In this document: positions 27,701 to 64,000 of the stretch, piece after piece
Numbering within the stretch: position 1 is the stretch's first letter
Layout: every line of letters starts with the position of its first letter
Assembly (NCBI GenBank): GCA_004431415.1
Contig: QPMI01000514.1
Coordinates: 310,001 to 374,000, forward strand
Length of the DNA: 64,000 nt
Origin: Cyanophora paradoxa CCMP329
Taxonomy: Eukaryota; Plantae; Glaucophyta
Direction: 5' to 3'
The notes under the pieces: generated by a model
Seen by the model: only the letters and a program-made list of their open reading frames with translations
Told to the model about the DNA's origin: nothing
Databases searched by the model: none
Position numbers and translations under genes: made by a program

Positions 27701-30700
27701 GAATTCGTACAAACTTAGACGCTGCGTCGACGGCGGTGTCGATAGCTGTTTACGTAGTGCACTTTTTAATTTGGCCCCTTCCGCTTCGAATTCTGCGGTG
27801 GACTTGGATTTCTGGGAGCTTCTGACACGGCGTGGGCGGGGCGGTGGCGCGGGGCAGCTGGACGCTGTGGTGGAGCGGCTGGAGGCAGAGTGCCGGGCCC
27901 TGGCGCCGGCGCCGGCCGAGGCGGAGGCGGAGGGGGCCTCGGAGGCGCCCGAGGCGGACGAGCTCGGCTCGGCGAGCGAGCCGGCCTTCGGGGCGCAGAA
28001 GGAGGCCCCGAAGGTGGCCGAGCTGGCCGCCGCCGCCGGCCGCCCCGTCGTCCTCTGCCTCGACGGTCCGCCTCTCCTGCGCACTCGCCGCTCAGTGTTT
28101 GAGCGCCAGCGGAATCGCGCGCAGCCATCAACCAGATCGAGGGCGGCAAGGCGATCGCCCTCGGCTGGCGCCTCGGCAAGTTCGGCGGTGCGAGTCTCGC
28201 CGGCGCTCCATCGCAGCCTTGAGCTTGCAGCTCGTGATCAGGGGCGCGCGTGGGCAGGGCCGGTGCGGCTGGTGGCGAGCTGCGTGCCCGGGGAGATTGC
28301 GCGGGGCTTCCAAAAGGACTTCAAGGCGGCGACCCTCTCCGTGCGCCAGCCCCAGCGCCTCACGCAAGAGCGCCGCGCGCGCGGCGCATTTAACGTTAAC
28401 ATGACTCTTTATAGGCGCTTAAGCTTAAGCTTCAAAACTTCCGTTGCCCTTGACAGAGTGCGCGCAGATCCCCAAAGCGGGGACGGCGCTCGCGGGCGAA
28501 ATCGTGCGCCGTTTTCGGAGCTTTTGTATCTTAGCTCCAAAAGCGATCGCGGCGGACTTTCAAACGGCGAAGGGCTCTCTCTGATGGGGGCTCAGGTGAA
28601 CACGGTGCTGGCAGACGTGGGGAAGAAGCTGACGGAGCCGCAGCTCGCCGCTGTCCTCGCCAAAAAGGGCGCCTCCAGCCCGTGCGCGCCCCTCCCATCC
28701 GGGCGGGGCCGGGCCGGATCCCCGTCGAGCCGGGCGGCCCCGGGCACGCAGGCTGTACCTGCGTCTGCTGGTGGACGAGCTCATCGTCTTCGGCGTCTTC
28801 GAACAGGTCCCCCCGCCCCGCCCCGCCCGCGTGCATGCGCGGCCGCAATAGAGATCTAGAGCAAACGGGAAGCAGTATTCACCCCCGGCCCCTCGGGCCC
28901 CCGGCGCGCAGCTGGACGCGCGGATCGCGTCGCTGCCGGGCGAGGCGGCGGCGCTCCTCGGGGCCGTCCTCGAGCGCCTCGAGGCCGAGAACGCCCCGGG
29001 CCTCGCTGAGGTGCCTGCCGCGACAAGGGATTATTCAGTTCAGGGATCGAGAGGAAACCTTAGAGTAGAGAAGAGCCGGGGCGCTTAATTAGATAGAGCC
29101 AGCGCGAAGAGCCAAGGCGCTTGAATAGAACCGGCGCCCTTGATCCTAGCTATGTAGGCCTCGCCGACGTGGACCCGCCCCGCCCGCCCTGAATCCGCGA
29201 ATCTCAAGCTTTCTCCCGGGGCGCGGAGAGTCTGGCGGCTTGCTGACGCGGCGGCGCAGGGGGCGCTGAGCCTGGTGGCGTGCTCGCAGGGCGGCCTCTC
29301 CGAGCCCGAGCTCCTCCTCGCCCTCTCCCTCGCCCTCCCCGCCCTCGCGTCCGCCGCCGCCCCGCCCGGCCCCCTCGTGGCCACCCCGCTGATCGCCGGC
29401 GGTGTGGGCGCAGGCCCAGCAGCCCCGGGCGCGACCCCGAGCCCCTGCCCCGCGCCCTCTGGTCCCCGCTCTACAACGCGTGCGCGCCCGCCCGCCCGCC
29501 GCGCCGCTCCAGACAGACACTGCCCCCCGAGCGCGTGGCTCCGCGAACGTGACGCCGCGGGGCAGGTTGGCGCACCTGCTGCGCCCCGCGAGCGCCGAGG
29601 GCGGCGTCCTCTCGTTCTTCCACCGGTAAAACCCTCCTGCCCATGCAGCCGATGGCCCTTCTATATTCCCGAATGAGAGGGCTGCCCCAGGCAAGTCCAG
29701 CGGGCCGTGCGGGGACGCTATTTGGCGGGGTGCCCCCACGAGAAGGCGCGCCCCCCCGCAAATCAAAGATCCCTTTCCCTGCAGCCTCCCCTCCCGCCTG
29801 ACGCTTGTGAGATCAGTGCGAAACGACGGAGAACGGAGACAACTGCAGCGAGGTACGCTCGCCCGCCTCGCAGACTGCGCTAAAGCTAGTTTTATATCGT
29901 GACGCTCTGCCGTCTGCGAATTCGAATGTTAGGCGCGGCCGGAGCCGGACGACGCGCTGATGAAGGGCGTGAAGAACTGGGACCAGCGCTGGGCCGCAAA
30001 GGGTGCCCCGCTAACTCTTCCGTCCCTCTGCCGCCGATCCCCGCGGCCGTGCGCGCTGACCTCGCGCTGACGTTGCGCATGTGCAGACGGCAAGTGGCAC
30101 CAGGTCCGCACCCCGGCCCCCGCTTCAGCTTCCCCTCGCCTCTCGAGCGCCGCGCCTGGGCATCTCGGGCGAGCGGGCGGGCCGGGACGGGGCAGGTGCT
30201 GGCGCTGATGGCGCTGCGGAGCCCGCGGTACCTCCCCAACGTCCGCCACCACCTCCTCATGAGGCCCGCCACCGTCGAATTCCCGAATTCCCGGCCCGCC
30301 TCTCACGCGCGAGCGCCGCGCCCTCCGATGCTCGCCCCGCCCCGCAGCGCGCCGTGGCGCAAGGCGACGGCGGCGGCGCCGGCGCTGGCGGCGGGCATGG
30401 CGCGCCTGAACTCGGTCGCGACCTTCCGCCTGCGCCTCCAGGCCTCCCGATGGTGGAACACGATGGCGCGCCCCACCCGCCCAGAGGAAAGATCGGGCAC
30501 TCTAGGCCCCCGCGATCTCGCCTCTTTTTAAATCTGGAAAACGCTCTTGCTATTACGATCGATTACAACATTTACATATAATGAGCGTTCTATGGATGGC
30601 GCCGGCGAATCGCGATCTCGCGATCGCGCCTCTGACGTCGGCCGGCGCCGCGCAGGAGCTGGAGGGCGCCGTCCGCGGGCTGTGCCAGGTGCCCTCGCGC

Positions 30701-33700
30701 TTCGAATTCAGATTCCCGCCTTCGCATCCTCAGCAGCTAAGACCGGGCTGCCGTGGCAGGGGCTCATCGCCCTCCCGAGCCTTCGAAAGGCGCTCCGGCT
30801 CCCGCCCCTCCTCGCGCGCCCGCCGCCGCCCCGCGGCTGGCCCCGAGCGGCGGGAGCGCAGGTGGACCTCGGCACGCCGAAGACGGTCATGGGCCAGGTG
30901 CGCGGCCGTGCGATCGCCGATTGTTTACAAGACGTAAAAGCAAATCACATCGAATCCGATCGGGATCGGGATTGGGATCACGCCCGCGGGCCTCGCTGAC
31001 CCCGATCCCGCGCAGTCGGCAGAGGCGTCGGTGACGAAGCTGACCAAGGGCGCAGCCTCCTACCTAGCCGGCCTCGTCCGCCGGTGCCGCACGCCGCCGG
31101 CCCCGCCCCCGCCGCCCCGCCCGCTCCCGCTCCCGCTCCCGCTCGCTCGCGGCCTGATGCGTGTGATCGCGGGGGGCGCGGGCAGAGCGCCCCACCTGCG
31201 CGTGCTCGACCTCTCCCGCATTGGAATGGCCTCGGTGCCCCCCGATCATGGCCCAGCGGCCCCTTCGACCCTGCCTTTCTCTGACCGGAGGGGCAGGACG
31301 CGCTGGGCCCGCTGGCGGAGGCGGTGGCGGGGCGGCCCGGCCTCACGGCCCTCTCCCTCTCCGACAACGACCTCTTCTCCGACGCCGCCCCCGTGCGCCC
31401 CGCCCCCGCGCCCCGCCCTAGCAAAATAGGAAAGATAGGGAGGATTAATAGCCTTGGCTGTTAGCTTCGATCACGTTCCTAAGACCACCTCCGACGAGGT
31501 CTCTCCCGTCCCGCCCCGCCCCGCCCCGCCCCCGGGAGCGCGAGAGCTCGCTCCAGCTTCCAATCGAAGAAGCTAAGGCGGCTATCGATGATCGAGTGTG
31601 GGGGGGCCGTGCGCCCCGCGCGTGCCGAAAGCGCGAGAGCGCGATCTAGATCTAGCTTGAGATTGCATCCCCGCGAGGTTCGATGTCATTTCATTCGTCC
31701 GACGGGGCGCGCGGGGCGGGGCGGGTCAGGCTCTGGGGCGGCTGCTGGCGGCGCCGACGGCCCTCCGCGTCCTCGACATCTCCAAGAACCGCCTCACCCG
31801 CAAGGGGTCCGCCCCGCCCCCAGCCCCGCGCCCCCCCGCGCCCGTCCCCCTGCAAGCTCGAGCGTCCTCCATAAACATGTTCTAGAGCGTCTAAACAAGA
31901 CCTGAGGCGACCCCGCGCTCCCCTTTTTTATTTGAGCGCGTTTTCAGGTCTTGTGCCCCCGAATAGATGTGCCTTGAGATCGAGTTATATTATCGATTCC
32001 AATTCGGGATCTCAGGCCTAGGAATAAGGGATCCCCCAACTTATTTTTTCTACGTCCTAATCAATGACTTATCGATCGGAGGCGAATATACATCGCGCAA
32101 CGGGGTTTAGATTTCCTAACGGAGCGGGGGGCCGGGGGCGGGCAGGTTGGAGGCGGCGGTGGGGGCGCTGACGGGGAACGCGGTGCTGGAGCTGCTCCTC
32201 GCCGACCACGTCGTCGTCGACGCCGCCCCCGAGGACGCCCACCGCGCCCTCGCCAAGGCCCGCCCCCCCACTCAAATCAAAGCTTCGAGCTCGAGGGGGG
32301 CCGTGAATATGGAGTTCGAATCGACGAGACCTGTAGTTTTAAGAGATTTAGATGCACATGATCATGAAGAATTAGTTCGAAGAGATTAGAAGCACTTGAA
32401 GACGCAGACGCTCTTTGAGGTCTGACCGAGCCGGCGGCGTCGAACGCAGGCCTTCCTGGCTACGAAGAACTCCACCTGCGAGCTCCGCCTCCTCAGGTGC
32501 GCCCCGGCCCGCGCATAGGCTTGTTCACGAGATGCTTCTTTCACTTCCCTCTCTTCGCCATAAAACACGCCGAGCCCCGACCGAGCGCGGCCGCGCCCGG
32601 CGTTGACGCTGACGTGGATCTCACGGCCGGCGGCCCCGACGCATGCGCAGGCTCGTCGAGGTGCGGCACACGAACCAGCGGCTGCGGAGGAAGCGGGGCC
32701 TGAAGGGGTACCCCAAGTCGAAGGACTTCCTCATGCTCTGGGCCTCCGACCTCGCCGTCGCCAAGTGAGTGGGGCATGGGACGCCCGCGCCGCGAGATCA
32801 GCGTGGGCCCTCGTGGCTATCGGTCTTCGGTGCTGACCGCGAGGCCGGCGCCCGAACGCTGCAGGGGCGGGGCGGTGCAGGAGCCACCGCCCTCGCCCTC
32901 GGCCGTCACGATCCGAACGATCGTCCACGACGTGCGGGTGCGCGCAGGCGCGAAGCTTTATTTTGAGAAATAATCTCTACCTCAACTCCCACGAGCTCCA
33001 TTCTTCGCCGATTCGATCTCAAGCTGGGTCCGGTGGTGAGCAGGTACCGAAGGCGGACGACTGGTACGGGCGGTGGGAGAAGGGCTGGATCGGGCGCGTG
33101 CTGGACCCCCTCGAGGCCGCCTCGGAGCGCCCCCGCTCCCTCGACCCCGCCCTTGGCGCCGAGGCGCGCCCGCGCCCCGGCCTCCATTTCCCCCCGTCCC
33201 CATAGCTGAAACATTCAGGCCTTCGAATCACCTCCGCCCGCCCCTTGACCCGCGCCTGTCGCCCCAGGCGGACGGCCTGGTTGGGATCTGGGAGAGCAGC
33301 GCCGGCGTGGGGGGCGGGACCGAGCTGCGCGTCCAGCTCTGCGAAAGCGACACAGAGGTGCGCGCAGGCGGCGCCAGAAAGAAGCGAGCTGTGCATGCGA
33401 GATATCGATGTTTTTTAAAAAACATTTGTAGTCGTCTTACGCGCGCGCGGGGGGCTCGGCGTCAGGGGGCGATGCGCGTCTTCGCCTGCACGCTGCGGGA
33501 CCCCGAGGTCGGCCTCCTCGTCGGCCGATCCCGCCCCGCCTTCGCCGCCGCCGCCGCCGAGCTCTCCCTCTCCGCCAAGCTCCTCGCCGGTTCGAGCACC
33601 GGCGCTGAGGAAATCAAATTAAAGGGCATAGATTTGATTCTCCGGTTCGCCACCACGATGACGGGTTGCACAGAGCCGGAGGGGACGCCGAAGGAGGGGG

Positions 33701-45843: not shown

Positions 45844-48706
45844 ATGGACCCCGCGCCCCAGCCAGAGGAGGACCCGTACCTCGATAAGAGGTGCGCCGGC
45901 CTGCGCGAGCCGCGCTAGCAACCCGCTGCAACAGCGCACCCCGCTCCCTTGCCTTGTAGCTAGCATGCAACAACTTCTTTGTGCGCTGAGCCGCTTTGCC
46001 GATACAGGTGCCGGGACTTCGGGTGGCTCCTGCTGCTCGCCGCTTATTCGGCGGGCTTGCTAGTGATCCTAGCGCTGGCATTCGCTCGGGGAAACCCGGC
46101 GGCGCTGCTGTATCCCACGGACAGCGCCGGCAACCTCTGCGGCTGGTCACCCGGCTACGAGGCCTTCCGCTCCGTGCACTATGTCTTTCCCTCCGACCTC
46201 TCCCGGCGCATCTGCGTCACTGCCTGCCCCGAATCCTTCTCCCTCCCTTCCGCCACCACGACGGTGCGCCCCAGCCGCAGCCCTGCCCCGGAGCCGCGCC
46301 GCCGCCGCGATTTGATCCGCGGCCCGCGCGCGCGCGCATGCAGAGCCTGGCGGAGCTGACGCTCTGCTCGCCGTCCTTCGACGCGCGGGCGCAGTGGGGC
46401 GGCTGCCCCGCGACCGCGCTCCGCGCCGTCCGCTACAGCGCCGCTGAGGCGTCGGCCTTCGCCAGCGGGGCCGGCGCGGCGCCCCTGGAGCGGCTGCGCG
46501 CCGCCTGCCCCGCGACGGGCGCCTCGCTGCAGGCGAGCTTCGAGCGGGGCGCTTGCGGCGTGCCGTTCCGCACCGTGAACGTCTTCGGGGTCTGCGTGCC
46601 GGCCGTGGACCCGACGGGCCTCAGCGCGGTCTCCCCCGAGGCGGCGCGCCCCGTGTACGCCGCCCTCAACGACCCCGGCTACCGCCTGCTGCGCTACCAG
46701 TCCGACCTCGTCGCCGCGTACCCCGTCATGGTGCGCCCCGCTGCCCCGCCGCCCCCGCTCGGCGCCGCCGACGCGGGGCGGGGCGGGGCAGCTGGTGACG
46801 GGCCTGGCGGGGCCGGCGGGGCTGGGGCGGCGTGGCTGCTGCTGGCGCGGGGGCGCCGGGCTGCTCCTGCCCGCCTCGGCGGCGACGCTGCTGGCGTCGC
46901 TCGCCGCCCTCTCCCTCCTCTTCTTCCACCGCGCGGGGCGCCTCGGCGGCCAGGACGCCGCCACGGCCGCCTCCGCCTCCCTGCGCGCCGCGAGCCTCGG
47001 CGTCGAGCCGGCCGCCCTCGGCGCACCCGACCCCACCGCCGAGCTCTCCAGGGCCGCGGAGGGCCTCGGCTGGGCCTGCGCCGCCCTGGGGGCCCTCCTC
47101 GGCGCCCTCTGCGCCCTCCTCGCCCGCCGCGCCCGCGTCGCCTCCGGCGTCGCCGCCGAGGTCGCCGCCGCCCTCTCCGCCCTCCCCCGCGCCCTCCTCT
47201 ACCCCCTCGCCACCGCCGCCGCCCAGCTCCTGCTCTGGACCTGCGGCGCCGCCGTGCTCCTCTGGCTCCTCGGAGCCGGCTCGCACAGCAATGGGGGTAG
47301 GGGCTTCGAGTTCGACGACCCGACCCGTGGAGCTGCAATCTACCTCCTTCTCGGCCTCTTTTGGTACCCCCCCCCCTCCCCCCACCCCCCCGCGCCTTGG
47401 CCGCAGGACCCCGGCCCCCTTCCCCTTCTTGAGTCCCCTGCAGGCTCGCGCTCTTCCTGGACGGGGTGGGGGAGTGCGCCCTGGGGGGTACATTCGCCGC
47501 GTACTATTTCACCCGCGACAAGGCACTCCCCTCCCTCCCCCCCCCACCGCCCTCCTGACGCCCGTACCCCTCTCCCAGGACGCGGTGAAGCAGCCGCCGG
47601 TGCTGGGGACGCTGTGGCGGACGCTGCGGCTCCACGCCGGCTCCGTCGCGCTGGCCTCGCTGGCCCTGTACCCCCTCATCGCCCTGCGCGCTGCCACCGG
47701 CGCGATCGCGCGGCGGGCGACCGCCGCCACCGGAGGGCCGGTGCGCCTTCCCGCGCTGTGCCGCACCCCCGCGCCGCCCCGCCCCGGCTGAGGGAGCGGG
47801 GGGCCAGTGGCGGTGGGCGGCGCGGGGCCTGCGGCGCTGCCTCGCCTGGCACGAGTCCCACCTCCAGTACCTCTCCCGCCGCGCCTACGTCATGGTGCCC
47901 CTGGCCCCGCCCCCCGCCTTTCACCCCGCCCCGCGTCCCCTTGAGCTCACGAGTACCCGGCAGATGGCCATCGAGGGGTACGGCTTCTGGCGATCCGCGC
48001 GGGACGCCCACGCCGTGGTGCGCGGGGCGCCTGGCCTGCAGCCGGGAAGCAATCGACTGGCCTGACAAGGTTCGCGCTTCGGTACCCCAGGTGGCGCACT
48101 ACAAGGGGTACGTCTCGCCGATCAGCAACACGGCGGACGGGCTCGTGCTCCTAGGTGCCCCCCTTCTCCCCCACCCTACCCCGGGAGCCGACGCCGACTC
48201 GCCCGCAGCGAAAGTGGCGCTGGCGACCGCGTGTGGGGCCGGCTGCTGCGCGTGGCTGACCCTGGACCGCGCGTTCGACCCGACGTGGGGGGCCCGCCCC
48301 GTCGCCAGCCCGCTGCTCCCCGTCCTCGTCCGCCCCCACCCCCGCCCGCGCCGGCCCGCCTCCTCGGGGGGCGGCGCCGGCTGAAGGCGGCCTCGCGCCG
48401 GCAGCTCGTCTGGGTGGCCGCCTACTCCATCGCCTCCGCCGTCATCTCCGTCTTCGCCATGGCCACGGTGCCGCCCCCGCCCCCGACCCGACCCGACCCG
48501 ACCCGCCCGCCCCCTCACGCGGCCGGCGCGGCGCGGGGCGGGGCGGGCAGAGCGTGATCCTCTTCTGCGCGTGCGTGGACCTGGACCGCAACAACGGCGT
48601 GGACCGCCCCTACTACGCCTCCCACCGCCTCCAGCAGTTCCTCCTCGACACGCAGCTCGCCGCCCTCCGGCCCCGCGGCAACGGCAAGGTCTACCAGGTC
48701 CCCTAG
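45844..48706 (+). CDS. Choline transporter-like protein (CTL/SLC44 family), multi-exon
   Basis: KR|CRDFGWLLLL...GNPAALLYPTDSAGNLCG, RRICVTACP, LRLHAGSVALASL, AYVM|MAIEGYGFW, and ILFCACVDLDRNNGVDRPYYASHRL match the CTL family. Stop TAG at 48704-48706. Confidence 0.93.
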
Positions 48707-49176: not shown

Positions 49177-50204
49177 CTAGCGCTGCGGTTCGCTGGCGGA
49201 TGCCTGGGCGCTGAAGAAGTTGCAGGCGACGGGTCGGAGGCCGTGCTGCTCCGCAAAGTCCCGCGCCTTGAAGCCGCAGCGCGACTCGGGGAGCTGCACG
49301 CCCTCCAGGCGCCCCGCCTGCGCCCCGCCGGATCAAATCCGCGCCCGCCCGCGGATCGAATTCGGATCGAGGAGAGAGCGCGGGACCTGCTCGAAGAGCG
49401 CGAAGACGTAGCGGTGGGGGCCCGTGCCCTCGGGCGGGGTCGGCCCCGCGTACTGCGTCAGGACGTCGCCCGTGGAAAGGTCGGAGCCCCGCACGTTCAC
49501 CACGATCCAGTGCCGCCTGCAGGCCGCGTCGCGTCAGCTAGAGAGGCCTGCCCCGTGGGAGCTCGAGAGCCCGGCGCGCCACTCTCCGCAACGTGGATTG
49601 CTGTGAGAAGGAGCGTCCGGATCACTCATTACGAGCTGCGGGCCCAAAGAAGGCGCACAGCGGTCAGCCGCGGTACCGGCGGGCGCAGCAGCATGCGCAG
49701 CCGCGGCCGCTAACCGTGTATAGCTTGCTTGCGTCGCCGGCCCAGCTCACGGAGGGCTGACTGCTAGCCTGCGACGGAGCGAAAGCGTTGCCACCGTTGA
49801 CGTCCAGCGCGCCTGTATGCGCGTGGGTGAACGTGAGGAGAAGCTTATCAGCTAGAGGTGAACGCCGCCCGCGCCTCCCCAGGGACGCACCCGACGACGA
49901 TGGCATCCTCGGCGCCCACGCCCGTCGCGTCCGCACTGGCGAGCTCACAGCGAGGGAGAGAGACGGCTGGAAGCCGGTCGGGAGGACAGAGCTGGCGATT
50001 GTGCTGTCCTCGTACGCATCTTTGAAGCAGTGGTTGGCGGCGTCGACGCTCTCCGCAGCGGTCACCTCGAGCTCATCGACGTACCGGCATCGCTCGCGTC
50101 CGTGAGGCTACAGAGCTCATCTGCGGCTGCAGCTGCGAATGCGGCCTCCGATCCCACCTCAGCCATTGAGGAACTTCGCGCTATACCCCCCAAGGGGCTC
50201 CGCA
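49177..50204 (-). CDS. Phosphatidylethanolamine-binding protein (PEBP; RKIP/FT/TFL1 superfamily), multi-exon; start codon uncertain
   Basis: Spliced QPSVSWAGDASKLYT|LVMSDPDAPSHSNPRCGEW|RHWIVVNVRGSDLSTGDVLTQYAGPTPPEGTGPHRYVFALFEQ|...RCGFKARDFAEQHGLRPVACNFFSAQ contains the DPDAP and GxHRY motifs. Confidence 0.92.
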
Positions 50205-50435
50205 TCTGCCAGCCTCAGCGACCGCAGCGGGACAAGAGCGACCGCAAACACAGGTATTGCAGGAAGGGGTGATCGTACAGCAACCATCAAGTACTGCCGC
50301 CACCCGTCGCTTCAGCTTCAGCTGTGCATAGGTAGTCAGTCGGCTGCAGGCGCCCAGTAGGGTCCTAAACGGCACGGCATAGCATGTGCATCTTCATAAG
50401 CGAGGCCCAGCCCTTGCAGATCATGGAATCCTAGA

Positions 50436-53400
50436 ATGCCAGCGCTGCTTACCCACGGCGATCTGGGCGTCCGGCCTACTGCGAACTCTTTCCCTCCGAT
50501 TATAGCACCACAAGGGAGGCAAGGCGCTCATCCACTTGCCGGCCAGCAGTCGACGGACAACCTCCATGGGCTCCACGCCGGCGGAGCGCCGGGTCACGGG
50601 CAGGCCCGCGGCCCGCGACCGCGAGCAAACTCTGTGGCAGTTGGTTCAGGAAGCTCCGCGCTCTTAGCTGCGGCGAACGGCTACAACGGGGTCGCGCACT
50701 CCAATGGCAAGTCACCGCCGGCAATCGCGCGGCTCTCCGCCGTGCCATCGGTAGTACGCAGACGCAGCGTCGCTACCGATGTCCTCCCGCCGCTCCCCGC
50801 CGCCGGCGACGGGAGCCCGCCGCACGGGATGGGCTCGTCGGCGTCAACCCCCGTCCTCTCCCGCCCCTCCTTCCCCGCACGCACGCCGTCTCCGCAGCCG
50901 CCGACGTACAGCCTCTCAGCGGCACCCACGCTGGACGCATCCCCACCCGCCTCGTTGCTCCAGTCCTCCGCATCTTCCCCCACGCTCTCCCGCCCCTCCT
51001 TCGTTTCGCGCGCACCCTCGCCGCAGCCCAGCTTCCCCTCCCCGTCCTCGGCGCGCCCGCCGCTCCCAACGACGCCGAACCGCTCGGGGTCGCTGCAGGC
51101 GCCCAGCGGGGGCGGGCGCGCGCCGTCGCCCACGCCCCTCCCGCGGACGCCCGCCTCGGTTGCCCTCGCCCAGCACAAGGGCTCCGGCTCCGGCTCCGGC
51201 TCGGGCGCCTCGCAGCACCGCTCGCCCGGCGGCGCGCTCTCCTCGTCGGGATCGAATCCGGCCATAGTGGCCGTGGAGGAGATGGCGGCCCCCGAGACCG
51301 GCGGCGGCGGCGGCGACTCCCGCACCGTCCGGCTCTTCCTCAGCAGGCGCGCGTTCTTACTCCGTACCCCCAGCACGCGCTCAGCGTCTGATTCGATCTG
51401 CACCGCGCAGCACGTTCCGGGACATGGTGCACGAGCGGGACGCGCTGTTCAAGAGCGCCGTGCCCCGCATTCGGCGCGCCCTCGCCGACCGCGGCCTCTT
51501 CTTCGTCGCCGTGGACCTCCGCTGGGTGCGCCTGCGCGCGCGCGCCGGTTCCGCAGCGGGGGGCGGGGCTGAGGGGGCGGGGGCCAGGGGATCACGGAGG
51601 CGGCGGCGAAGGGGGGCGAGGTGGTGCGCCTCTGCCTCCGCGAGGTCCTCCGCTCCAAGTACTTCATCAGCTTCCTCAAGCGCCGCTACGGCTGGCCCGC
51701 CCCGCCCCCTCCCCCCCTTCCATCCTGCTCTCTCCGCCCTTGTTCGGGCCCCCTCACCCTCCCCGCAGGCACCAGGACCCATCCGCCCCCCACGACGCCC
51801 TCTTCGCCAAGCGCGTCGCTCCCCTCCGCCGCCGCCGCCCGTCGCTCACGACGGGTACCCCCGCGCAGGTCGGTGGACCGGGCCGCGACGGAGTTCCCGT
51901 TCCTGCGCTCGTACCCCGGCCGATCCGTGACCGAGTGGGAGTGCCGCCTCGGAGCCTTCCTGGACGCCGCGGTACCCCCTCTCGGTCGCTCGCGGCCCGC
52001 CCTACCCGCCGGCGCCTGACGCCGTACCCCCCCAGGGCCACGCGAATGTCAGGAAAGACACGAGCCGGTTCTACTTCGCCAATGCGGCTCTCATGGCTGC
52101 CGCGGCGAAGGTTCGCCCGCCGCGCGAGCGTTCCTCCGCCGGTCCGAACCCGTACCCCAGGAGGAGGCCTCCCAGGAGGGCGCGTACGCGTCGCAGCGGC
52201 TCGAGGCGCTGAAGGCGGAGATCTCCGGTACCCCAGGGATGCCCGTGGGGGAGTACTCGGGCGCGGCGGACCTCGCCAACTCCGTGTACAATGATTTCAT
52301 GCAGGCGCGCCGCCCGCGCACCCCCCTCACACCTCGCCGGCGCGTACCCCCCTCACCGGCGTTCCGTCCGGGGTACAGATGGTCGAGAGGGACTTCCCCC
52401 GCGGCCGCGAGAAGAGTTGGCTCCAGGTCTGCGGGCGTCCCCCTCCGCACGCTGAGCCCCGACCAACGCGAACCCCCCTCCACAGGCGGAGCGGCAGGCG
52501 CACGAGGCGTTCGGGCAGGCGCGGAGGCGGCTGTGCGCCCTCCGCCCTCCCGCCCCGCGCGGCGCCGGCGGCTGAGGCGGGGCGGCAGGTACTACGGGGC
52601 GCGGAGCGACTACGAGAGGATGGACGCATACGCTGCGGGGGCGGGCCCCGAGATCCTGCTCGTCCGCGGGGAGTCGGGGGCCGGCAAGTCGGCCCTCATG
52701 GCGAACTGGTCCGAGTCCTGGCGCCGCCGCCACCCGGGCGACCTCATCATCGTCCACTTCGTCGGCGGTGCGCGCGCGCGCGGGGCCGGATTAGAAGAAA
52801 CGAGACCTTCAATGTCGAGCTTCTGCAAGAGACCGTCAGCCCCGCCTGAGCCGCGGGGTCGCCGCAGGGAGCCAGCAGAGCGCGCGCGTCTCCAACCTCA
52901 TCCAGTGCGCCCGTCGCTCCGCTCCGCGCCGCCCCCGAGTGCCTTTTCCTGAGGGGCGGGGGGCAGGCGGGTGTCGGAAGAGACGCGGGAGCGCTTCCCG
53001 CTGCTGCCGGCCCTCGACATGGGCGGCTCCGAGGGCGAGGTGCGCCCCGCTCCCGGCCCCGGCCCCGCTGAATAGCTAGCTAGCAAGCACGCCAAGTTGC
53101 TACCGCGCCGCTCTGATCGCCCCTGACATGGCCCCCTGCTCCTCCTCCTGGGCGGCAGCTGATGGCGCGGTTCGCGACGTGGCTCTCGGAGGCGGCGGTC
53201 CTCTTCTCCGCCCGCGTCGTCCTCGTCGCCGACGCCCTCGACCAGGCGCCCCTCCTCCGCAGCCGCCGAGAGCGTGGGGCGTGCACGGCGTGGGGGCGCC
53301 CGCTGACCCCCCTCCCCTCCCCCCGCGCAGCTGGCGGACGACGGGGACGCGCAGCGCCTCTCGTGGCTCCCGCCGGCGGCCGCCCCCTCCCTCCGCTTCA

Positions 53401-56400
53401 TCCTCTCCTGCGTCCCCGGCCGCGCCATGGACGCCGCCGAGGCCCGCCCCGCCCGCCCCGCCCCGGCGCCGCAGCGGCGCAGCAGCGGCGCCGCCCCGCC
53501 CCGAGCTAGCTCACGCTGCCGGCGCGCGCGCGCAGGCGCGGCCGCACCTGCCGCACGTGGTGACGCCGCTGGACAACGCGCGCCGCCGGGGCGTCATCGA
53601 GGCCGACCTCCGCCAGGCGAGGCCTCCACGCCGGCCCTCCCGAACCCCGCCCCCGCCCCCTTACCCCTCCCCCTCAGGCCGGCAAGTCGCTCTCGGAGGC
53701 GCAGATGGAGCGGCTGCTGGGGGCCGAGCAGTGCGCCAACCCCCTCTTCCTCATGGTGGTGCGCGCGGCAGCCGCGGGGCTGGCCGGGGCGGGGCGTGGC
53801 GCGGGGGGTGGGGCGGGGCCGACGGGGCGGGTGCGGGGCAGCTGCTGGAGGAGCTGGAGACGGGGGCGGTGTACGAGACGCTGGACCCGCGGATGGAGGA
53901 GCTGCTGCGGTGCCGCGAGCCCCGCGAGCTCTACGGCAAGGTCATCGAGCGCTGGGCCGGCCTCTACGGCGAGACCCTCGTCCAGGCACGCCCGCGGCCC
54001 CGCTCTCCCCCGCCCCCGCACCCTTGCCTGCTTTCCCGAACGGCGCCGCTCGGCACGGCAGGGCTGCCTCTGCGCCATCGTCTGCTCCAGGCACGGCATG
54101 GCCGACGCCGAGCTGCAGGCGCCCGCGTGCACCCTCCCCTTGGCTCGCGCCGGCGCCTGACCTCTGCGGGCGCGCGCAGCTGCTCCTGGGCGTGGGCAGC
54201 GGGGACACGGGCTCCATGTCGGAGATCGTGACCCCGGCGTCCCCTGCGGACGCCGGCGCCGTCTCCCCGCTCACCTGGTCCGTCCGAGACGAGTCGTCCT
54301 CTTTCGCCGCTCGGGGGGGCCCTGACGGCGCCGTCGTCCCGCCAGGGCCGAGTTCCTCGCGGTGGCCAACTCGATCCTCATCAACCGCGACGGCCTCTAC
54401 GGCTTCTTCCACCGCGCCGCCAACGAGGCCCGCCGCAGCCCTTTCGGAGCGCCCCCGCCCCCGCCGCGCTCTCCTGAGCGCGCCCGCCCGCAGGCCGTGG
54501 AGGAGCTGTACGGGATCGCCGCCAAGGTGGCGAACGTGAGCGGCAAGGGCGCCGGGTGGCAGAAGGCGCGGGCAGCGGGGCGGGCCCTCCGCCGCAACAA
54601 GTGGCACGCCCGCCTCGGAGAGTTCTTCGCCAAGCAGGCGAGCGAGCCTTCGCCCACCCGCCCCGCCCGGCGCCCTCCGAGCAGCGCCGCGTGTCGCAGC
54701 CGCCCTCGCGGAGGAAGGCGGACGAGGCGCCCTGGCAGCTCGCCCGCGCCAAGGAGAAGGAGAAGCTCGCCCAGGTCCGCGCCCCCCGCCCTCTCGCACG
54801 CAGGCCGGAGGCGTCCTCTCCCCGGGGGGCTGAGGCGGGGGCCGGGGCGGGGCAGGTGCTGACGGACCTGGACGTGCTGCGGCGCCTGATGGACTCCTCC
54901 GCCACCCGCCACGAGCTCGTCCAGTACTGGGTCGCCACCGGCGCCAAGGACGTGCGCCCCCGCCCCGCCCCGCGCCCCCCCCACAACTTGCCGGCCCATC
55001 GAGCATCGAGCACGGGCAACTGCGAGCCGCGCCGGCCGCTGACGGGTCTCGCAGGGGGCGCCGAAGCGGTACGAGAAGGCGATCGGGCGGGCGGCGGCGG
55101 GCGGGGAGACGGGGGTGGAGGTGGCGATGCACTGGCAGCGGGCGGGGGCGCTGCTGCGGCTGATGGGGCTCTTCGGGGAGGCGACGCCCTTCCTCGAGCG
55201 CTCCGTCCAGCTCCTCGACGAGGCCGGCTCCGACGGCCTCCAGCTCCAGGCCAGCCCCCTCCGTCCTTACTCCAAATATCGCCCCTGCCGGCCCCGCGAG
55301 GGGCGCCGTCTCACGCGGCCGGCCCGGCGGCGGCGGGGGCGCAGGCGGCGGGGGCGTACGAGGAGCTGGCGAACCTCTACGCCGACCGGGGGCGCTACGA
55401 CCGCGCCCTCCCGCTCCTCCAGGCCCGCCTCGCTCGGCCGGCGCGTTTGACCGCGTGTGTGGCCCCTGACCCCGCCCCGCCCTGCAGAAGGCGATGGGGA
55501 TCCGGACGGAGACGCAGGGCGGGAGGCACCCCGACGTAGCCGGATGGTGCCCCACCCTTTGCTTCCCTCGGCCCCCGCCTCCGCGCCCCTTTGAGCGCGC
55601 CGCGCCGCGCCGCAGCCTGGACAGCATCGCGCTGCTGCACGCCCACAGGGGCGAGCTGCAGAAGGCGGAGGACCTGTTCACGGTGCGCCCCCGCCCGCCG
55701 CCCTTGCTGCCGTCCCGGCGCGCCTTGCGCCGCGCCGACGCGCGCGCGCACACGCAGCAAGCGAAGGCGATCCGGGAGGCGGCGCTGGGGGACAGGCACC
55801 CGGACGTGGCGCTCTCGCTGGACCACATCGCCGCCCTCGACAAGCGCCGCGGCCGCTACGACGACGCCGAGCAGCGCCTGCGCGTGCGCCCCCGTCCCTT
55901 CCCCCGCCCCCTCCCGCCCTCCCCGTCCGACCGCCGGGGCCGCAGAAAGCGCTGCAGATCCGGCAGGCGGTGCTGGGGAAGGACCACCCGGACGTGGCCG
56001 CCACGCTCAACGTCCTCTCCCAGGTCGGCCCACGCAGGCCGCGCCACGCCCGGCGTCCTGTCCACGCTCACCACCCCGCAGATCAACACCCTCTCGGGCC
56101 GCCACGACGAGGCCGAGCAGCTCGTCACGGTGCCGCCCCGCCCCGCCCCGCCCTGCAACTCTGCCCCCGTGACACTCTCGCTCCCCGCGCAGCACGCTAT
56201 GCAGATCCGGCAGCGCGCGCTCGGCGGTGCGCCAACGCTCCTCCCTGCCCGGCCCGGCCCCGCCGGCCCTGACTCCGGGCCCCCGGCAGAGGACCACCCG
56301 AAGACGGCGGACTGCCTGCGGGCGCTGGCGGCGCTGCGGATGGCGCAGGGGCAGCCCGAGGAGGCCGAGAAGCTCTGCCGCAAGGCCCTCGAGCTGCAGA

Positions 56401-59400
56401 AGGTCGCCCTCGGCCGGTCCGCCCGTTGCATTCTCGGGGGGGGGAACCTGCGGGGGTCGACGGGGCGTGGCGCGGGATGCGGGCAGGTCGCACCCGGACG
56501 TGGCGTCGACGGAGCACCAGCTGGCGACGATCTGCGACGCCCAGGGCCGCTTCGACGAGGCCGAGGAGCGCTTCCTCGTGCACCCTTCGCCCCTCCTCGT
56601 CACACGGCGCCGTGTGTGTGACGGGGCGGGTGCCTGCAGCGGGCGCTGGCGATCTGGGAGGCCCGCTTCGCCTTCAACCACGCCTACGTCGCCGAGGCGC
56701 GCCCTCTCTCCTCCGCTTTATCCCCCGCTTTCCCCCCTGCTTTCTTCTCCTCGCTGACGACCGCTTGCGGGGCAGACGCTCTCGGCGCTGATCTCGATGT
56801 TCATGGCCCAGGGCCTCCAGAGGCGGCTGGAGGACTTCCTGCGGACGCGCAACTCGGACCCCGCCCTCGCCCTCCGCGACTGCGCCGCCATCTGCGCCCT
56901 CCAGGGCATGTTCCCCCAGGCGCGCACGCGAGCCAGCGAGCCGGCGCCCCCGCCCCGCCGCCCCTCTCTGACGTCGCCCGCAGGCGGCGGCGATGTACAA
57001 CCGGGCGCTGGAGATGGCCAAGACGGCCCTGGGCCCCCGCCACCCCGAGGTCTGGTCTCCACGCCCTGGATCCCTGCGGGGGCCTCGCGTGCGGGGGTGC
57101 TGAGGGGGGCGGCGGGGCAGGTGGGGGACTACATATCCGCCCTCGCGATGTTCCACGCCGACCAGCAGGAGTTCTGGCTCGCGGAGCCCATGCTCCAGGC
57201 CCGCCCCCCCGCCCCGCCCCGCCTCTCGTTCAGCTGCCGCCGCCGCCGCCTCTGAGCCGGCTCGCGGGGCAGGAGGCGCTGGAGCTGCGGAAGAGCGCGC
57301 TGGGGGCGAACGACCCCAAGGTCGCCGACTCCCTCTTCGACCTCGCCGCCTTCTACAAGCGCCAGCACCACCTCAAGGAGGCCGAGCCCCTCCTCAGGGC
57401 GAGCCGCCCCCTCCTCTCTGGCCTTGCCTTCTCCGCAGCTGAGGGGCGGCCGCACGGCAGCGCTGCCTGGACATCCGGGACCTGCAGCTGGGGGCGGGGA
57501 GCCCGGAGGCGGCGGCGGCGGCCCGCGAGCTCGCCGCCGTCTGCGTCGAGCTCGACATGCGCTCCGACGCCATGCAGCTCTACCAGGTCTCCCCCCGCTC
57601 GTCGCAGCCTCCTTCCTTCTCGGCTCACCGGGGGGCGGGCCTCGCGGGTGCAGCGGCTGCTGGAGAGCAACGAGGCGGTGGCGGCGGCGGGGCAGGACGA
57701 GGTGTCGGTGGCGGCGACCCTCCACGAGCTCGCCACGCAGCTCTACAAGGCCGGCGACACCGACGCCGCCCTCGCCGCCTCCGAGGTGCCCCGGCCCGCC
57801 CCGGCCTCCAGAGCCCCCCGCCGGCCTCTGACGCCGGGCAAGCGGGCGATGCCGTTCTGCGAGCGGGCGCTGGGGCGCTCGGACCCGCGCGTGGAGGAGC
57901 TGGCGCTGAACCTCGGCGCCATCGCCCTCAAGGAGTACCGCCCCATCGACGCCGAGCGCCTCTACCGCGTGCGCCCCCCCGCCCCGCGCAACGCGCGCCG
58001 GCGCCGCCGACTCCCGCCGCGGCAGCGGGTGCTGGACAACCGGAAGGGGGCGAGCGGGGGGAAGGAGGGGATGGACGTGGCGGGGGTGCAGGCGCTGGAG
58101 GGCCTCGCGGCGGCGTACGTGATGCAGGGGAAGACGAACGACGCGGCGGAGCAGTACGAGCGCCTCCTCCACGAGCAGCGCCGCAGCGCCTTCGTCGGGC
58201 CCGACCACCCCTCCACCAGCGACACCGTCCGGCCCCCGCCCCCTCCAGCCCGCGCTCCACCTCTCGGGGCCCCTCTGAGCCGCCCGCGCAGATGCAGCAC
58301 CTGGCGGACATCCGCTCGACGCAGCAGAACAAGGCCCCCGAGGCCGAGGCCCTCTACACGGTGCCCGCCCCGCGCCCCGCCCCGCCCATTAACCCCCTCT
58401 CCGCTCCGCCGCTTACGCCCTCGCTCGCTGCAGCAAGCGCTGGAGCTCCGGAGGCGCCTGTTCGGGCAGAGCGACCGCAAGGTGGCCGCACTTGTTGCTC
58501 TCTTCTTCCTGTTCTTCCTGCTCGCGGATCTCCGTTTGATCTACGCCCCTCCGTCAAGGTGGCGGAGACGATGCTGGGCCTGGCGAAGCTCCTGAGCGCG
58601 AACGGGCGCCACGCGGAGGCGGAGCCGCTCTTCCGGCAGTGCCTGGAGATGCCGACGGGGAGCTCGGCGGCGCTCATCGAGGTGCTCGGCGGCCTCGCCG
58701 ACGCGTACGAGGCGCTTCACAGGCGCTCCGAGGCGGCCGCCACGCTGCAGCGCCTGCTCGCCATGCAGCAGGCCTCCCCGCTCCTCGGCAAGGTCCGCCC
58801 CGCCCCCGCCCCCGCCGCCGGGCCGCCGGCCGCTGGGCCGCTCAGCGCGGGGGCGGGGGCAGGACGCGCCGGAGACGGTGGCGACGGCGTACCGCCTGGG
58901 GCGGGCGCTCGCGGAAGAGCGCAAGTACGAGCTGGCGGAGCCGCTGCTGCAGCGGGCGGTGGCGGCGCGGGAGAAGAAGATGGGCGGGGAGCACGCGGAG
59001 ACCGCCGAGGCCTCCCTCGCCCTCGCCGACGTCCTCAAGGCGCGCCCTCCTCACAGCAGAGTCTCACACAGCTCGCGGGTGATCTCCTCCGCAGGCACGG
59101 GGCAAGTACACGGAGGCGAGCGTGATCTACCAGAAGTGGCTGCGCCTGCGGCTCCCCCGCCTGGGCGGCCCGGGCGCCGAGCAGCTGCAGCTGCTACGCC
59201 TCATCGCGAGCCTGCAGGAGTGCGAGCGCCAGCAGCGCGACTGGGACGCCCTCTCCAAGGTGCTGCCACGAGCGCCCGCCTCGGGTGGCGCCTCTGACAG
59301 CGCCCGGCAGCGCGTGCTGGAGTCGCAGGCGCCGCGGCTGGACATCAAGGACCAGCGGGGGCCCCTCCCAGGCCAGGACGAGTGGCTCTGGAAGGCCCGC

Positions 59401-61429
59401 CCGCCCCGCCGCCCCGCCCCCGCCGCCCCTCCGCCCCTGACGCCGCCGCCGCCGCAGAACGAGGAGGGCGTGAAGCGCTGGAACGAGGCGATGGACGCGC
59501 TGAAGGTCCTCGAGTGCAGCGCCTCTGCTCCGCGGCGCGCCGTGACGCGCCGTGTCGCAGCGGAGCGGCCCGACGTCGGTTGAGTACGCCAAGTCCCTCA
59601 AGCTCTGCGAGGACGCCTTCACGGTGCGCGCGCGCGGGGCGCGACGAGGCCCGGCCCTTCGCCCTCGCTGAGCGCGCCGGGTGCAGGGCTCGCTGGCGGT
59701 GCGGGAGAAGCACCTGGGGCCGACGGACGCGCGCTGCGCCATCGCCGCCGACAACCTCGGCCTCCTCCACGTCCACAGGCGCCCCCGGCCGCCTCCCCTC
59801 CTGCCCCGCCCCGCCCGCCCGCCCTGACCGGCCGCCCGCCCGCTCGGCTCGGCTCGGCGCAGGGGCAACAACCAGCTCGCCGAAGTGCTCTTCAAGGTGC
59901 CCCCCGCGGCCCGCGGCGCCCCGGCGCCTCGCCGGGTGCCGACGGCGCCGGCAGCGCTCGCTGGCGCTGCAGGACGCCGGCTCGGCCTCGCAGAAGGGCA
60001 ACGACGCCCGCATGGCCGCCCTCGCCGGTGCGCGCCCCCGCGAGCCCCGCCCTCCCCGCGCCCCCGCTCACCCCGCCGGCCCCGGCGCCCGGCGCAGACA
60101 CGGTGACGCTGCTCTCGGCCCTCGTGCTCCGCCGCGACGACTACAAGGAGGCCGAGACGCTCCTCAACGTGCGCGCGCCCCGCCTGCGCCGGCCCCGCCG
60201 CCCGGCGCCCGACCGGCTCGGGGCCGGCGCGCAGCGGGCGCTGGACCTGCGGAAGCGCGCCCTCGGCCCCAACGACCCCAAGGCCCGCGCTGGCGCCGCC
60301 CCCGTGCAAAAGCCCGTCGGCCGCTGAGCGCGGGAGGCGTGCGCAGGTGGCAGCCTCGCTCTTCTCGCTGGCGCAGCTCTACGCGGCGCAGCAGAAGCTC
60401 GCGGACGCGGAGCCCCTCTACAAGGTGCGGCGAGAGGGCCGGCCTCGGAGCCCGCGCCTGACCCCGGGGGGCAGCGGTGCATGGAGGCGCGGCTCAAGTC
60501 GCTGGGGGAGAAGGACGGCGCCACGGTGGAGGCGATGATGGCCCTCGCCACCCTCTTCAACGTCTCCGGCCGCCCCGCCGAGGCCGAGCCCGTCCTCCGC
60601 GTCCGTCCCCCCGGCCCCCCTCCTCCCGCGCCCCGCGGTCCCGCCGCTGAGGGGACGGGGCGGCAGCGGGCGCTGGGGGCGCGGGAGAAGGCCCTGGGCC
60701 CCAACCACCACGAGGTCCGCCCCGCCCCGCCCACACGCCCCCCCTACTCTCGCTGCTCTCTCCCAACGCTCCGCACGCCCCCACCGCCCCACCTTTCCGC
60801 CCCACCCCCCCCGCCTACGCGCCGGCGTGCACGTGGCCGACGCCCCGCCTCCCGCGCAGGTGGCGGACGTGCTCTCCGAGCTCGCCGCCTCGTGCCTCGC
60901 CCAGCGCCGCGCCCCCGAGGCCGAGAAGCTCCACAAGGTCCGCCGCCGACGCAATCACAAGACTGCACTCTTAATCGTTTATATAATGGAACAATGCACT
61001 CTCAAACGTTTATAGAATACAGTTCCTTCGGTCGCTGCCGCGCTGACCGGACGCTGCGCCGGGCAGCGGGCGCTGGAGATTCGGGAGCTGCGTGTGGCGC
61101 GGAGCCCGGACCACGTCCGCTCCCTCGCCCAGGTGCCCCGCCCGCGCCGGTTGAGATTGTTCTGCGCGCCCCTGAGCGCCGGCACCCGCGCGCGCGCAGC
61201 TCGCGGCGCTGTACCTTTCGGAGAAGAAGCCGGCGGAGGCGGAGCCCCTCGTCAAGGCGAGCCGGCCGCCCCCGCCTGTCCCGCCCCCGCCCCCTCTGAC
61301 CCGCCCGCCCCGCAGAAGCTGCAGAAGATCCTCAGCGACTCGGGGGCCGGCCTCGCGCCGGCGGCCTCCGTGCCCCCGGCACAGGGCGCCCCCGGGCGGG
61401 CCGTAGTGGGCCCCTCCAAGACCCACTGA
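50436..61429 (+). CDS. STAND NTPase: Ser/Pro-rich N-terminus - DUF4062 - NACHT-type P-loop - long array of 42-aa TPRs (nephrocystin-3/TTC41-like), multi-exon
   Basis: VRLFLS|STFRDMVHERDAL, VAVDLRW|GIT, LCLREV, RRYGW, SVTEWE. Walker A LLVRGESGAGKS (~52655-52690), LIIVHFVG, Walker B VVLVADALDQ|L, NPLFLM, YGFFHR. Many ALxIRxxxLGxxHPDVA repeats from ~55050 to 61330. Stop TGA at 61427-61429. Confidence 0.92.
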
Positions 61430-61926
61430 GCGGCGCTTTAGCTTTCTTTCTGTATAGTCTGTGCCCGTGTGCCACGCTTTTTCGCCTGCGCGTCTATTTG
61501 TATAGCTCTAGGTATGGACCCAGAAACCTTGGTAGGGTATGAGATTTGGCCTCCTTTTTTCGGGCCTATTTGTGTCGCCATTGTGCCTGCAGGATGCGCT
61601 AGCTGTAGAAACTTGGAAACTTGGAACCTTTCAAGAGATGGCCGCTGTGTGTGCGAGACGGACCCTGCCACTGGCCCACTGGCCGCGCTTGAAGCCTGGC
61701 CCCTCAAGCCCCTCTTGAGTCCGGATCCTGAGCTCGATCGGGAGCTCCAGGGACGCAGTCACTGAGTCGCGCGGGTTGTTGAATTTCGCGCAGCCCGGCC
61801 CGGCCCGAAAGCATGCGCCCCGCACACAGCCATTCGAATCCGACTTGCGCATGCGCGCATTCTATGCCTATGACTTGCGCATGCGCGCATTCGAATCCTG
61901 CTACACAATGCACCGCCAAGCCCCGG

Positions 61927-64000
61927 CTACCGCTTGCGGCCCGTCACCGCCCGCCGCAGGCGCTTCGCCGGCTTCTCGCGCTTCTGCCGCCGCGCCGCCT
62001 CGGCCCGCGCCCCCGCCGCGAGCGCCGCCGCCTTGCGCTTCTTGCCCCAGCCCTCGCGCGGACCCCCGGCGCCGCCCGCGCCGGCGACGGCGACTGCGGC
62101 GGACCCGACGGCCGCGCGGACCGCCTCGACGGCCTCGCTCGAGGCGGTGAAGTAGCTCCGGGAGACGCCTGCGCGGAGGGGCGCGGCGCAGGCGTCAGGC
62201 AAGCGGGTCGCCTTCGCTCGAGCAGGGGCGGGGCCGGGGCGGGCCGATGGGGACGAGGGGCCGGGCGAGGAGGGCGTCGAGGTCGGCGCGGAGGCGGGCG
62301 AGCTCGCGCCCCTTCACCTCCCGCGCCCGCTGCTCCGCCAGCTCCTCGCTGCGCCCCGGGCCCGCCGTCACCCCCGCCCGCGCTCGAGCCGGCAGGCGGC
62401 GCCGCCTCGCGCTCGTTAGGCCCGAGCGTGCGCCTCGCTTAGCTCGAGGCGCCGTCGGGGGCCGCCGGGGGCACGCTTAGGTCCAGGTCAAGGCTAAGCT
62501 CGGCTTGAGCGGGGGCCGGGGGCGGGGGGCGGACATCTCGTCCTTGGGGCGGGCCTCCTCGTCCATCTCCGCCGCCTCCGCCCCGCGCTTGAACCACGCC
62601 TCCTTCACGCGCCCCTGCCCGCGCCGCGCCCGATCAGATCAGATCAGGTCAGGTCAGGTCGCATCGGATTTCAGATGAGATCTGACCTTGCGGGAGCGGT
62701 TGAGGGCGACGTCGAGGCGGCGGGCGAGGGCGAGGCGCTCGCGCAGCGCCGGCACGTACACCGCCTCCACCTCCAGGTCCGGCAGGCCCCCTGCCCTGCC
62801 CCTGAGCACAGCGGCACAGCACAGGGGCGCGGCGCGGCGGGCGGCGCACGGCGGTCGAGGAACTTGAGAATGGACGCGAAGAAGGGCCGGTCGTCGGCGC
62901 TGTGGCGGGGCGGGACGGGGGCCGACGTCACACGCCGGCGCGGGGCGGGGCGGGGCGGGGCGGCGGCTGGAGGGAGGGCGGCACCTGACGAGGGCGACGG
63001 AGGTGCCGGTGCGCATGGCGCGCGCCGTGCGCCCGCCCCGGTGCACGTACGTCTGCCGCGCGTTCCAGATCTCAGCAAGGCGGGGAGGGCGAGGGGGGCA
63101 GGGAAAGCGAGGCGACCTCGGGCGTGCGGGGCAGCTGGTAGTGCACCACGCTCCGGACCTGCGGCGCGCGCGTAAGGGCTCGGGATCGACTCCGGGCGGG
63201 TCGGGATCGTCGTGGGGACCTCGGGGATGTCGAGGCCGCGGGCGGCGACGTCGGTGGCGACGAGCACGGCGTTCTCCTCCTTGCCGAAGCGGTCCAGGCT
63301 CTTCAGGCGCTGCCGCTGCGTCCGCCCCGCGTCAGCGCCTTCACGCTGGCGGCGCGGGGCGGGGCGGGGGGCGGGCGCCTGCTGCATGGCGGCGTGGAGG
63401 CCCCAGGCCTTGACGCCGAGCAGCGTGAGGATGTTCACCAGCCTGGGGGAGAGGGGAGGAGGTGAGGGCGGGGGAGGGGGGCGGGGGAGGGGGCGGGGCG
63501 GGCCGCTTGACGGCGGTGACGGCGTTGACGAAGACGATGGTGCGGCCCCCGATGCGCTGCGCCACGTAGTACACGTACTGGTCCTGCGCCGGCGCGCGCC
63601 ACGGGGGCGGCGCGTGGGCGTGCGGAGGAGCGGGGAGATGCGAGGGGCGAGCGGACCTTGTCCTCCTTGGCGCACTCGACCTTGCGCTGGTCGAGGCCCG
63701 ACACGACCCGCTGCAGGCCCCGCCCCGGTCACGCCGGGGCAAGCGCGGGGCGGGACGGGGCGGGGGAGGGGGCGGGGGCGGCGGGCCTGGAGGGGCGTCA
63801 GGTCGACGATGCGCGGCTGCGAGCGGAACTCGATCTTGTCCAGCAGCTCGTCTGCCCCGCCCCGCCCCTCAGCGGCCCCGCAACGCGATTTCGCTCGACC
63901 GCGGCGCCGCACCGAGCTGCTTCTGGGTGGCCGTGCGCTCGTCGCTGGCCTTGCCGCCGCGCCTCGGCCTCTCCTCCTCCTCCTCGCCCTTCCTCCGCCG
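61927..64000 (-). CDS. DDX24: DEAD-box RNA helicase DDX24/MAK5-like, 3' part, multi-exon; 5' part outside the window
   Basis: GRTIVFVNAV, LHAAMQQ|RQRLKSLDRF, VLVATDVAARGLDIP, VVHYQLPRT, YVHRGGRTAR, and RERLALARRLD. The MQQRQRLK and HYQLPR forms point to DDX24/MAK5. Confidence 0.9.

Follow-up and report, generated by a model that had tools for sequence, protein, structure and literature searches.

A gene for an NLR-like protein was analysed in a 64,000-nucleotide stretch of the genome of the glaucophyte Cyanophora paradoxa CCMP329 (assembly GCA_004431415.1, contig QPMI01000514.1, positions 310,001 to 374,000 of the forward strand), which is called the window below and is numbered from its first letter. 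The gene lies on the plus strand, and its C-terminal part encodes an array of tetratricopeptide repeats (TPRs) in which introns recur at the same place of the repeat. A preliminary description, made from the letters alone, had presented this array as a sensor ready for exon shuffling or skipping, with a relic of old tandem duplication as its fallback; the fallback proved to be the better-supported reading. The gene model was obtained by splice-aware dynamic programming and was hand-corrected against the repeat register. Its main parts are the following.

50829..61429, plus strand: NLR-like DUF4062 / P-loop NTPase / TPR gene, coding sequence as modelled, about 62 introns, about 2080 aa

50829..50831, plus strand: likely start codon, in the same frame as ATG 51282 (MGSSAS, a myristoylation-like MGxxxS); a Ser/Pro-rich leader of 151 aa comes next

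51282..51971, plus strand: putative DUF4062 (NIR, TIR-like) region of four exons, with the candidate catalytic Glu codon at 51933-51935 in S-V-T-E

52589..54118, plus strand: STAND P-loop NTPase module (NACHT-like), Walker A GESGAGKS at 52668-52691

55067..61256, plus strand: TPR array of about 25 units of 42 residues, degenerate from about 59095 to 59690, from Pfam single-exon matches and a self-built hidden Markov model (HMM) of the unit

61427..61429, plus strand: stop codon TGA, in the last exon 61316-61429

The family searches were run exon by exon, and the joined protein was used only for the repeat register, the unit identities and the BLAST comparison with a paralogue in the same window. 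Pfam families TPR_12, TPR_10 and TPR_NPHP3 matched single exons, and three matches stood above the curated cut-off: exons 58559-58792 and 58863-59039 scored 38.7 and 36.7 bits with TPR_12 (cut-off 30.1), and exon 55758-55883 scored 30.3 bits with TPR_10 (cut-off 27.5). The repeats are TPRs of the KLC/NPHP3 type, and the consensus taken from 15 units reads RAL..R..ALG..HP.VA..L..LA.....G...EAE.L. The TPR part of the gene (55067-61429, plus strand) comprises 39 exons and 38 introns in the model. These introns measure 50-145 nt with a median of 65, and a branch-like CTGAC or CTGAG motif lies upstream of most acceptors.

The introns of the TPR part were mapped onto the repeat register. The mapping revealed that 33 of the 38 are in phase 0 and that the boundary between residue 42 of one unit and residue 1 of the next carries 18 strict introns, or 20 when the degenerate units are counted, all of them in phase 0. 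A second recurrent phase-0 site, between unit residues 16 and 17 just after HPx, carries six introns. The remaining 12 occupy unique positions, five of these being in another phase. The two recurrent sites are occupied as follows, by register mapping.

55423-55487, 55683-55757, 55884-55945, 56130-56192, 56578-56639, 57199-57272, 57399-57460, 57587-57653, 57786-57842, plus strand: strict phase-0 boundary introns, first nine

57969-58025, 58361-58433, 59624-59686, 59897-59954, 60169-60234, 60425-60474, 60601-60666, 60938-61066, 61257-61315, plus strand: strict phase-0 boundary introns, last nine

59260-59310, 59395-59457, plus strand: probable boundary introns in degenerate units

55250-55344, 57050-57120, 58482-58558, 60283-60346, 60715-60859 and probably 59506-59560, plus strand: introns at the second phase-0 site

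The coincidence at the boundary site has a probability of about 1e-26 to 1e-30 when corrected for 126 sites, and that at the second site about 3e-5. A boundary intron is found at 18-20 of the roughly 27 unit boundaries, and at least five boundaries are without one, for example between EKLCR and KALELQ near 56380 and between EPLLQ and RAVAAR near 58950. The preliminary description had named 16 junction peptide pairs, and all of them were recovered where it had placed them, on the plus strand and in phase 0, with gaps of 50-129 nt that start with GT (12) or GC (4) and end with CAG. Its equivalent position and phase are therefore confirmed, and its count of about 16 was too low, introns 57786-57842 and 59624-59686 having been missed. 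The exon bases before the boundary donors differ from one another (CAG, ACG, CGC, CTC, AGG, AAG, AAC), which makes a common insertion-site motif unlikely.

Only five exons consist of exactly one unit.

55758-55883, 57273-57398, 57461-57586, 57843-57968, 60475-60600, plus strand: exact one-unit exons of 126 nt

The first three of these had already been given as 126 nt each, and the sum of 126 stated for exons 55946-56023 and 56082-56129 was likewise reproduced; pieces 57841-57968 and 60473-60600 are present in spliced contigs. Five exon pairs add up to 126 nt, and elsewhere units have merged into exons of 127-234 nt. Exon lengths of 48 nt and of 78 nt each occur five times in the TPR part, the intron at residues 16 and 17 giving recurring 48 + 78 nt pairs. 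Helix B is interrupted by the boundary intron, which follows EAEPLY. and precedes RAL.IR; hence the exon is not a structural TPR, but its gain or loss would restore a hybrid helix that stays in register. Since 28 of the 37 internal TPR exons are flanked by two phase-0 introns, gain or loss of such an exon keeps the frame, and because all boundary introns fall at the same residue of helix B, the repeat register would survive it too. The earlier statement that units can be removed or added in frame holds to this extent, but the use of this property in skipping or shuffling is unsupported.

The base composition and the intron density of the surroundings were compared with those of the array. GC content ranges over 53-77% per 2 kb in the window and is about 75% over the TPR array. 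Among the introns of the TPR part 27 are GT-AG and 11 (29%) are GC-AG, and the share of GC-AG introns usual in eukaryotes is roughly 1%. For the GC-AG introns 59040-59094, 59395-59457, 59779-59862 and 60283-60346 this is the sole canonical reading of the joints in spliced contigs. In the TPR part the introns have a higher GC content (80%) than the exons (73%), and GC at third codon positions (GC3) reaches 98%. Intron GC above exon GC was reported only for C. paradoxa among 65 species surveyed (PMC6142364), and the genome of this alga has 67.6% GC, 9.2 introns per gene and a mean intron of 86 bp (PMC6704402). Exons of about 100 nt with short introns are also present in the modelled N-terminal half, in a choline-transporter-like gene upstream and in the in-window paralogue; at such an intron density about one intron is expected per 126-nt repeat. 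Intron 60938-61066 is among the two longest of the array because about 85 nt of AT-rich sequence are inserted at 60945-61035 in otherwise GC-rich sequence. This insert contains an imperfect direct repeat (GCACTCT.A..CGTTTATA twice) and could be the footprint of a small mobile element.

The gene is transcribed. Contigs of three RNA-like runs (X1, X2 and X4; three samples, two studies) and of a 2012 DNA run (X8) were aligned to 55345-61340. The RNA-like contigs are 7120, 3864, 2189 and 1699 nt long, and 13 joints (58226 to 60345) among those listed in them correspond exactly to model introns when the ambiguity of the cut is allowed for. The listed joints include those of boundary introns at 59260, 59395, 59624, 59897 and 60169 and those of the second site at 58482, 59506 and 60283, and the remaining boundary introns agree with the distances in the contig records or with the aggregate word share. 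The record distances from 56916 to 58026 (658 nt) and from 58026 to 60600 (1610 nt), as well as smaller gaps, equal the summed model exons, which means that no exon is left out between 56776 and 60600. As regards isoforms, the contigs therefore gave a single form with all exons over this interval, in three samples from two studies. For the part from 55345 to 56774 the support is collective only, coming from the word share and from depth in all bins, and the 7120-nt contig from X1 begins 4128 nt before 56774. The share of the sampled words is 0.34-0.36 in seven runs from two studies and 0.56-0.85 in two runs of 2012, against 0.388 expected for a fully spliced copy. The contigs of X8 retain the introns; they are separate and collinear with the window, and their longest listed pieces are without differences. 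The natural reading is that the contigs of X1, X2 and X4 are RNA, as their joints are absent from X8 and the word share is near the spliced expectation. The joint check covers the TPR half, and the N-terminal half (50829-55066) is given by the model alone.

The predicted protein looks as if it were ordered into a leader, a DUF4062 domain, a P-loop NTPase of the STAND/NACHT-like kind and about 25 KLC/NPHP3-type TPRs. The start is likely to be ATG 50829, because third-codon-position GC rises at about 50796 from 0.57-0.77 to 0.93-0.97; the alternatives are ATG 51282 and ATG 50436. Around the last of these, which opens a long in-frame stretch, the codon bias appears non-coding. Provided that the contig of 7120 nt represents a single transcript and that the N-terminal model is right, the 5' leader would extend over 50181-50828 (about 650 nt), with upstream ATGs and short open reading frames at 50385, 50423, 50567 and 50705. 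In the DUF4062 region, exon 51588-51692 (35 aa) matched Pfam DUF4062 (PF13271) with E=2.9e-4 and 21.4 bits (cut-off 24.7) over model positions 33-65 of 82, and the remaining exons of the region gave no Pfam match singly. In the translation, FLSSTFRD was recognised by eye as a start motif, together with SVTE. The in-window paralogue has S-V-T-E-L-E, and the motif was matched by eye to the published description, in which the essential glutamate of DUF4062 lies in an acidic motif of the S-Y-T type (10.64898/2026.06.25.731849).

The P-loop exon 52590-52766 matched AAA_16 (E=2.3e-5), NACHT (E=1.4e-3, 19.0 bits, cut-off 26.7) and NPHP3_N (E=0.026), while the later NTPase exons had no family match singly. 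NB-ARC was absent among the 13 Pfam families that matched this exon with E up to 1. PADLOC on single exons gave no convincing match, the model mad8 (E=5e-4) touching the P-loop only, and a PDB sequence search with single exons was uninformative. The joined NTPase module of 260 aa was 28.5% identical (E=1e-20) to that of the in-window paralogue at about 25.5-31 kb, both being predicted models, and the BLAST alignment contains a Walker B-like VVLVADALDQ. The motifs hhhhDALDQ, SCVPG and NPLFL/SPLYL of the module were read by eye in the predicted models. In the paralogue (25519-31083, plus strand) the P-loop is split by an intron between LLVTGG and AGSGKSS, and the NTPase-module introns of the two predicted models lie at different places. 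This lack of coincidence suggests that the turnover of introns has been heavy since the separation of these genes.

DUF4062 has been described as a TIR-like NADase domain that is N-terminal in most of its eukaryotic carriers, which are NLR-like (10.64898/2026.05.01.722283, 10.64898/2026.09.04.749371). These 2026 preprints place it in NWD1, NWD2, TEP1 and NPHP3 of humans, in TTC41, of which humans have a pseudogene, and in Avs2 of bacteria, and only TEP1 was an active NADase under the conditions tested, NWD1, NWD2 and NPHP3 not being so. The prevalence of DUF4062/NIR in Archaeplastida is low, at 9% (10.64898/2026.09.04.749371). The most concrete mechanistic analogy is with bacterial proteins of the Avs2 type such as PsAvs2, which combine, in the order predicted here, DUF4062, a STAND NTPase and a TPR sensor; unlike the present gene these are prokaryotic and intronless, and their trigger is known. 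In PsAvs2 the catalytic Glu is required for NAD+ depletion and for phage defence (10.64898/2026.09.04.749371). Animal NPHP3 and TTC41, which have NWD1, NWD2 and TEP1 as WD40-bearing relatives, have the order predicted here, of DUF4062/NIR, NACHT-type NTPase and C-terminal KLC-type TPRs. TPR_NPHP3 and NPHP3_N gave weak matches on single exons of the present gene, and the likeness seen is one of domain order. A word search with region 1-130 of open reading frame 55494-56618 returned generic TPR_12 proteins (259-650 aa), bacterial and eukaryotic, and neither a copy of the gene nor a paralogue, the length window excluding proteins of about 2000 aa; single units of the present array are 53-63% identical to these proteins, and the matches span one unit (29% of the query) and are uninformative on the NTPase and on exon structure.

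For the exon pattern the closest known system is that of the NB-ARC-TPR candidate receptors of Ectocarpus, which have TPR exons of 126 nt (Zambounis et al. 2012, PMC3341825). As in the present gene, a STAND NTPase is followed by TPRs of 42 residues, and exons of 126 nt or 42 aa allow units to be gained or lost without a shift of frame. The two organisms are algae, and in both an immune-receptor role has been proposed without functional proof. In Ectocarpus inactivated TPR exons lie inside introns, the exon number varies between recent paralogues, recombination is visible in dot-plots and signs of positive selection were reported (PMC3341825). The receptors there carry NB-ARC and no DUF4062, whereas NB-ARC is not among the Pfam matches of the P-loop exon here, and the present array has no relic exons, diverged units and few exact one-unit exons. 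NLR-like proteins with DUF4062, NACHT and TPRs and TPR arrays with one repeat per exon are both kinds already known.

The array is probably a relic: an exon-intron cassette would have been duplicated in tandem, a long period of divergence with intron loss and gain would have followed, and splicing would be constitutive today. The ancestral cassette would have comprised one unit of 126 nt and a phase-0 intron at its boundary, in some cases along with another phase-0 intron following residue 16, and it would have been amplified by tandem duplication, probably through unequal crossing-over. Because the cassette is symmetric, every copy would have stayed in frame. The array would then have aged, the units diverging to about 26% identity, several boundary introns being lost and about 12 introns being gained at unique sites. 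Constitutive splicing would join the present array into a single long solenoid. If Avs2 and other STAND proteins are taken as a guide, ligand binding would fall to the TPR solenoid and oligomerisation to the NTPase, with the N-terminal DUF4062 domains being gathered to act on NAD+.

Several points weigh against this account. The RNA label of the runs is an automatic guess, and contigs lose rare variants, so that minor exon-skipped isoforms would be missed. Nucleotide divergence and dS are poor clocks at the GC3 of this gene, and the units are short and saturated. The comparison of units covers this gene, so that exon exchange with paralogues over evolutionary time would be missed. As regards the protein itself, the matches to DUF4062 and to NACHT come from single exons and lie below the Pfam curated cut-offs; the DUF4062-NACHT chassis named in the preliminary description is plausible at the exon level.

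It is unlikely that the array is an active diversifying sensor, in which exon skipping, or germline or somatic duplication and exchange of exons, varies the TPR surface. The large share of exons in phase 0-0 and the boundaries that keep the repeat register speak for such a sensor, as do the NLR-like context with a possible NADase effector domain and the precedent in Ectocarpus (PMC3341825), but the contigs show one all-exon transcript form only, over 56776-60600. The only long skips listed, from 57227 to 58232 (1004 nt) and from 57524 to 60174 (2649 nt), were rejected as isoforms since they have 21-nt sides and non-canonical ends in simple GC-rich sequence, and one of the two is also present in the DNA run. 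The units are old and diverged, without high-identity pairs. Their mean identity is 26% at the amino-acid and 49% at the nucleotide level, and the best pair, 57273 and 60235, reaches 61% and 70% and differs in intron content by one intron. The DNA repeat families of the array show 60-81% identity over 30-80 nt only, and its introns gave no alignment to one another. Inactivated TPR exons were not found when the unit HMM was run in six frames over the 38 introns and both flanks (best E=0.59), nor did the antisense strand give a TPR exon with the same HMM (best E=0.046); introns of 50-145 nt offer too little room for a unit. No rearrangement was seen when the 2012 DNA contigs and the RNA-like contigs were compared with each other and with the window over the parts covered, the 2012 contigs being collinear there, and clean one-unit cassettes amount to five exons. 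These results do not bear out the shuffling and skipping that had been proposed, and the Ectocarpus parallel drawn with it is sustained in part by the 126-nt TPR exons and does not extend to NB-ARC, relic exons and recent exon copies.

Parallel intron gain, in which the array expanded with few introns or none and introns were later inserted independently at one favoured site of many repeats, in a genome that readily acquires them, is unlikely. Introns are indeed very frequent across the gene and its neighbours, the 12 unique-site introns show that gains happen in the array, and the NTPase-module intron positions are apparently not common to the paralogue, as judged from predicted models. The single intron by which the most similar pair of units differs points the same way. 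However, 18-20 introns at one site and in one phase are hardly expected from independent events, the exon bases flanking the boundary introns form no consistent target motif, and the recurring 48 + 78 nt pairs suggest an inherited two-exon cassette. An artefact of the gene model, by which the introns would be GC-rich stretches of a continuous or differently spliced coding region, can practically be dismissed: although at 75% GC all six frames contain long stretches free of stop codons and the home-made predictor was trained on the preliminary description's own junctions, the spliced contigs reproduce the joints and exon sums exactly in the checkable part, the word share fits a spliced copy, the DNA run retains the introns and CTGAC/CTGAG branch-like motifs precede most acceptors.

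The genes on either side were also inspected. The upstream neighbour (47227-48697, plus strand) is a multi-pass membrane protein gene with exons of about 100 nt, and its exon 47579-47716 matched the plasma-membrane choline transporter family (E=2.4e-4). Downstream, a convergent gene on the minus strand (61950-64000) runs past the end of the window and looks like a DEAD/DEAH-box helicase, exon 63225-63330 matching Helicase_C (E=1.8e-7) and HRGGRTAR lying at about 63043. Within the short spacer that separates the 3' end of the NLR-like gene from that of this convergent gene, GACTTGCGCATGCGCGCATTC, which includes the palindrome GCGCATGCGC, occurs twice at 61840-61895, 30 nt apart.

The relic reading concerns the history of one array, and a wider idea was considered beside it, namely that an NLR-like family with repeat-per-exon TPR tails exchanges or re-amplifies exon cassettes between and within loci over evolutionary time. 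This is doubtful; if true, it would mean an exon-cassette receptor repertoire in a single-celled plant relative, independent of the brown algae and built on a DUF4062 NADase - NACHT chassis.

The finding provides a transcript-backed NLR-like gene with the putative order DUF4062, NTPase and TPR in a glaucophyte, DUF4062/NIR being rare in Archaeplastida according to a 2026 preprint. The same architecture is known from bacterial Avs2 defence proteins and from animal NPHP3 and TTC41. The periodic phase-0 exon pattern is by itself not evidence of an active diversifying system. The array would be a record of intron history, in which two inherited sites were copied together with the repeat, some introns were lost afterwards and roughly a dozen were gained at unique positions.

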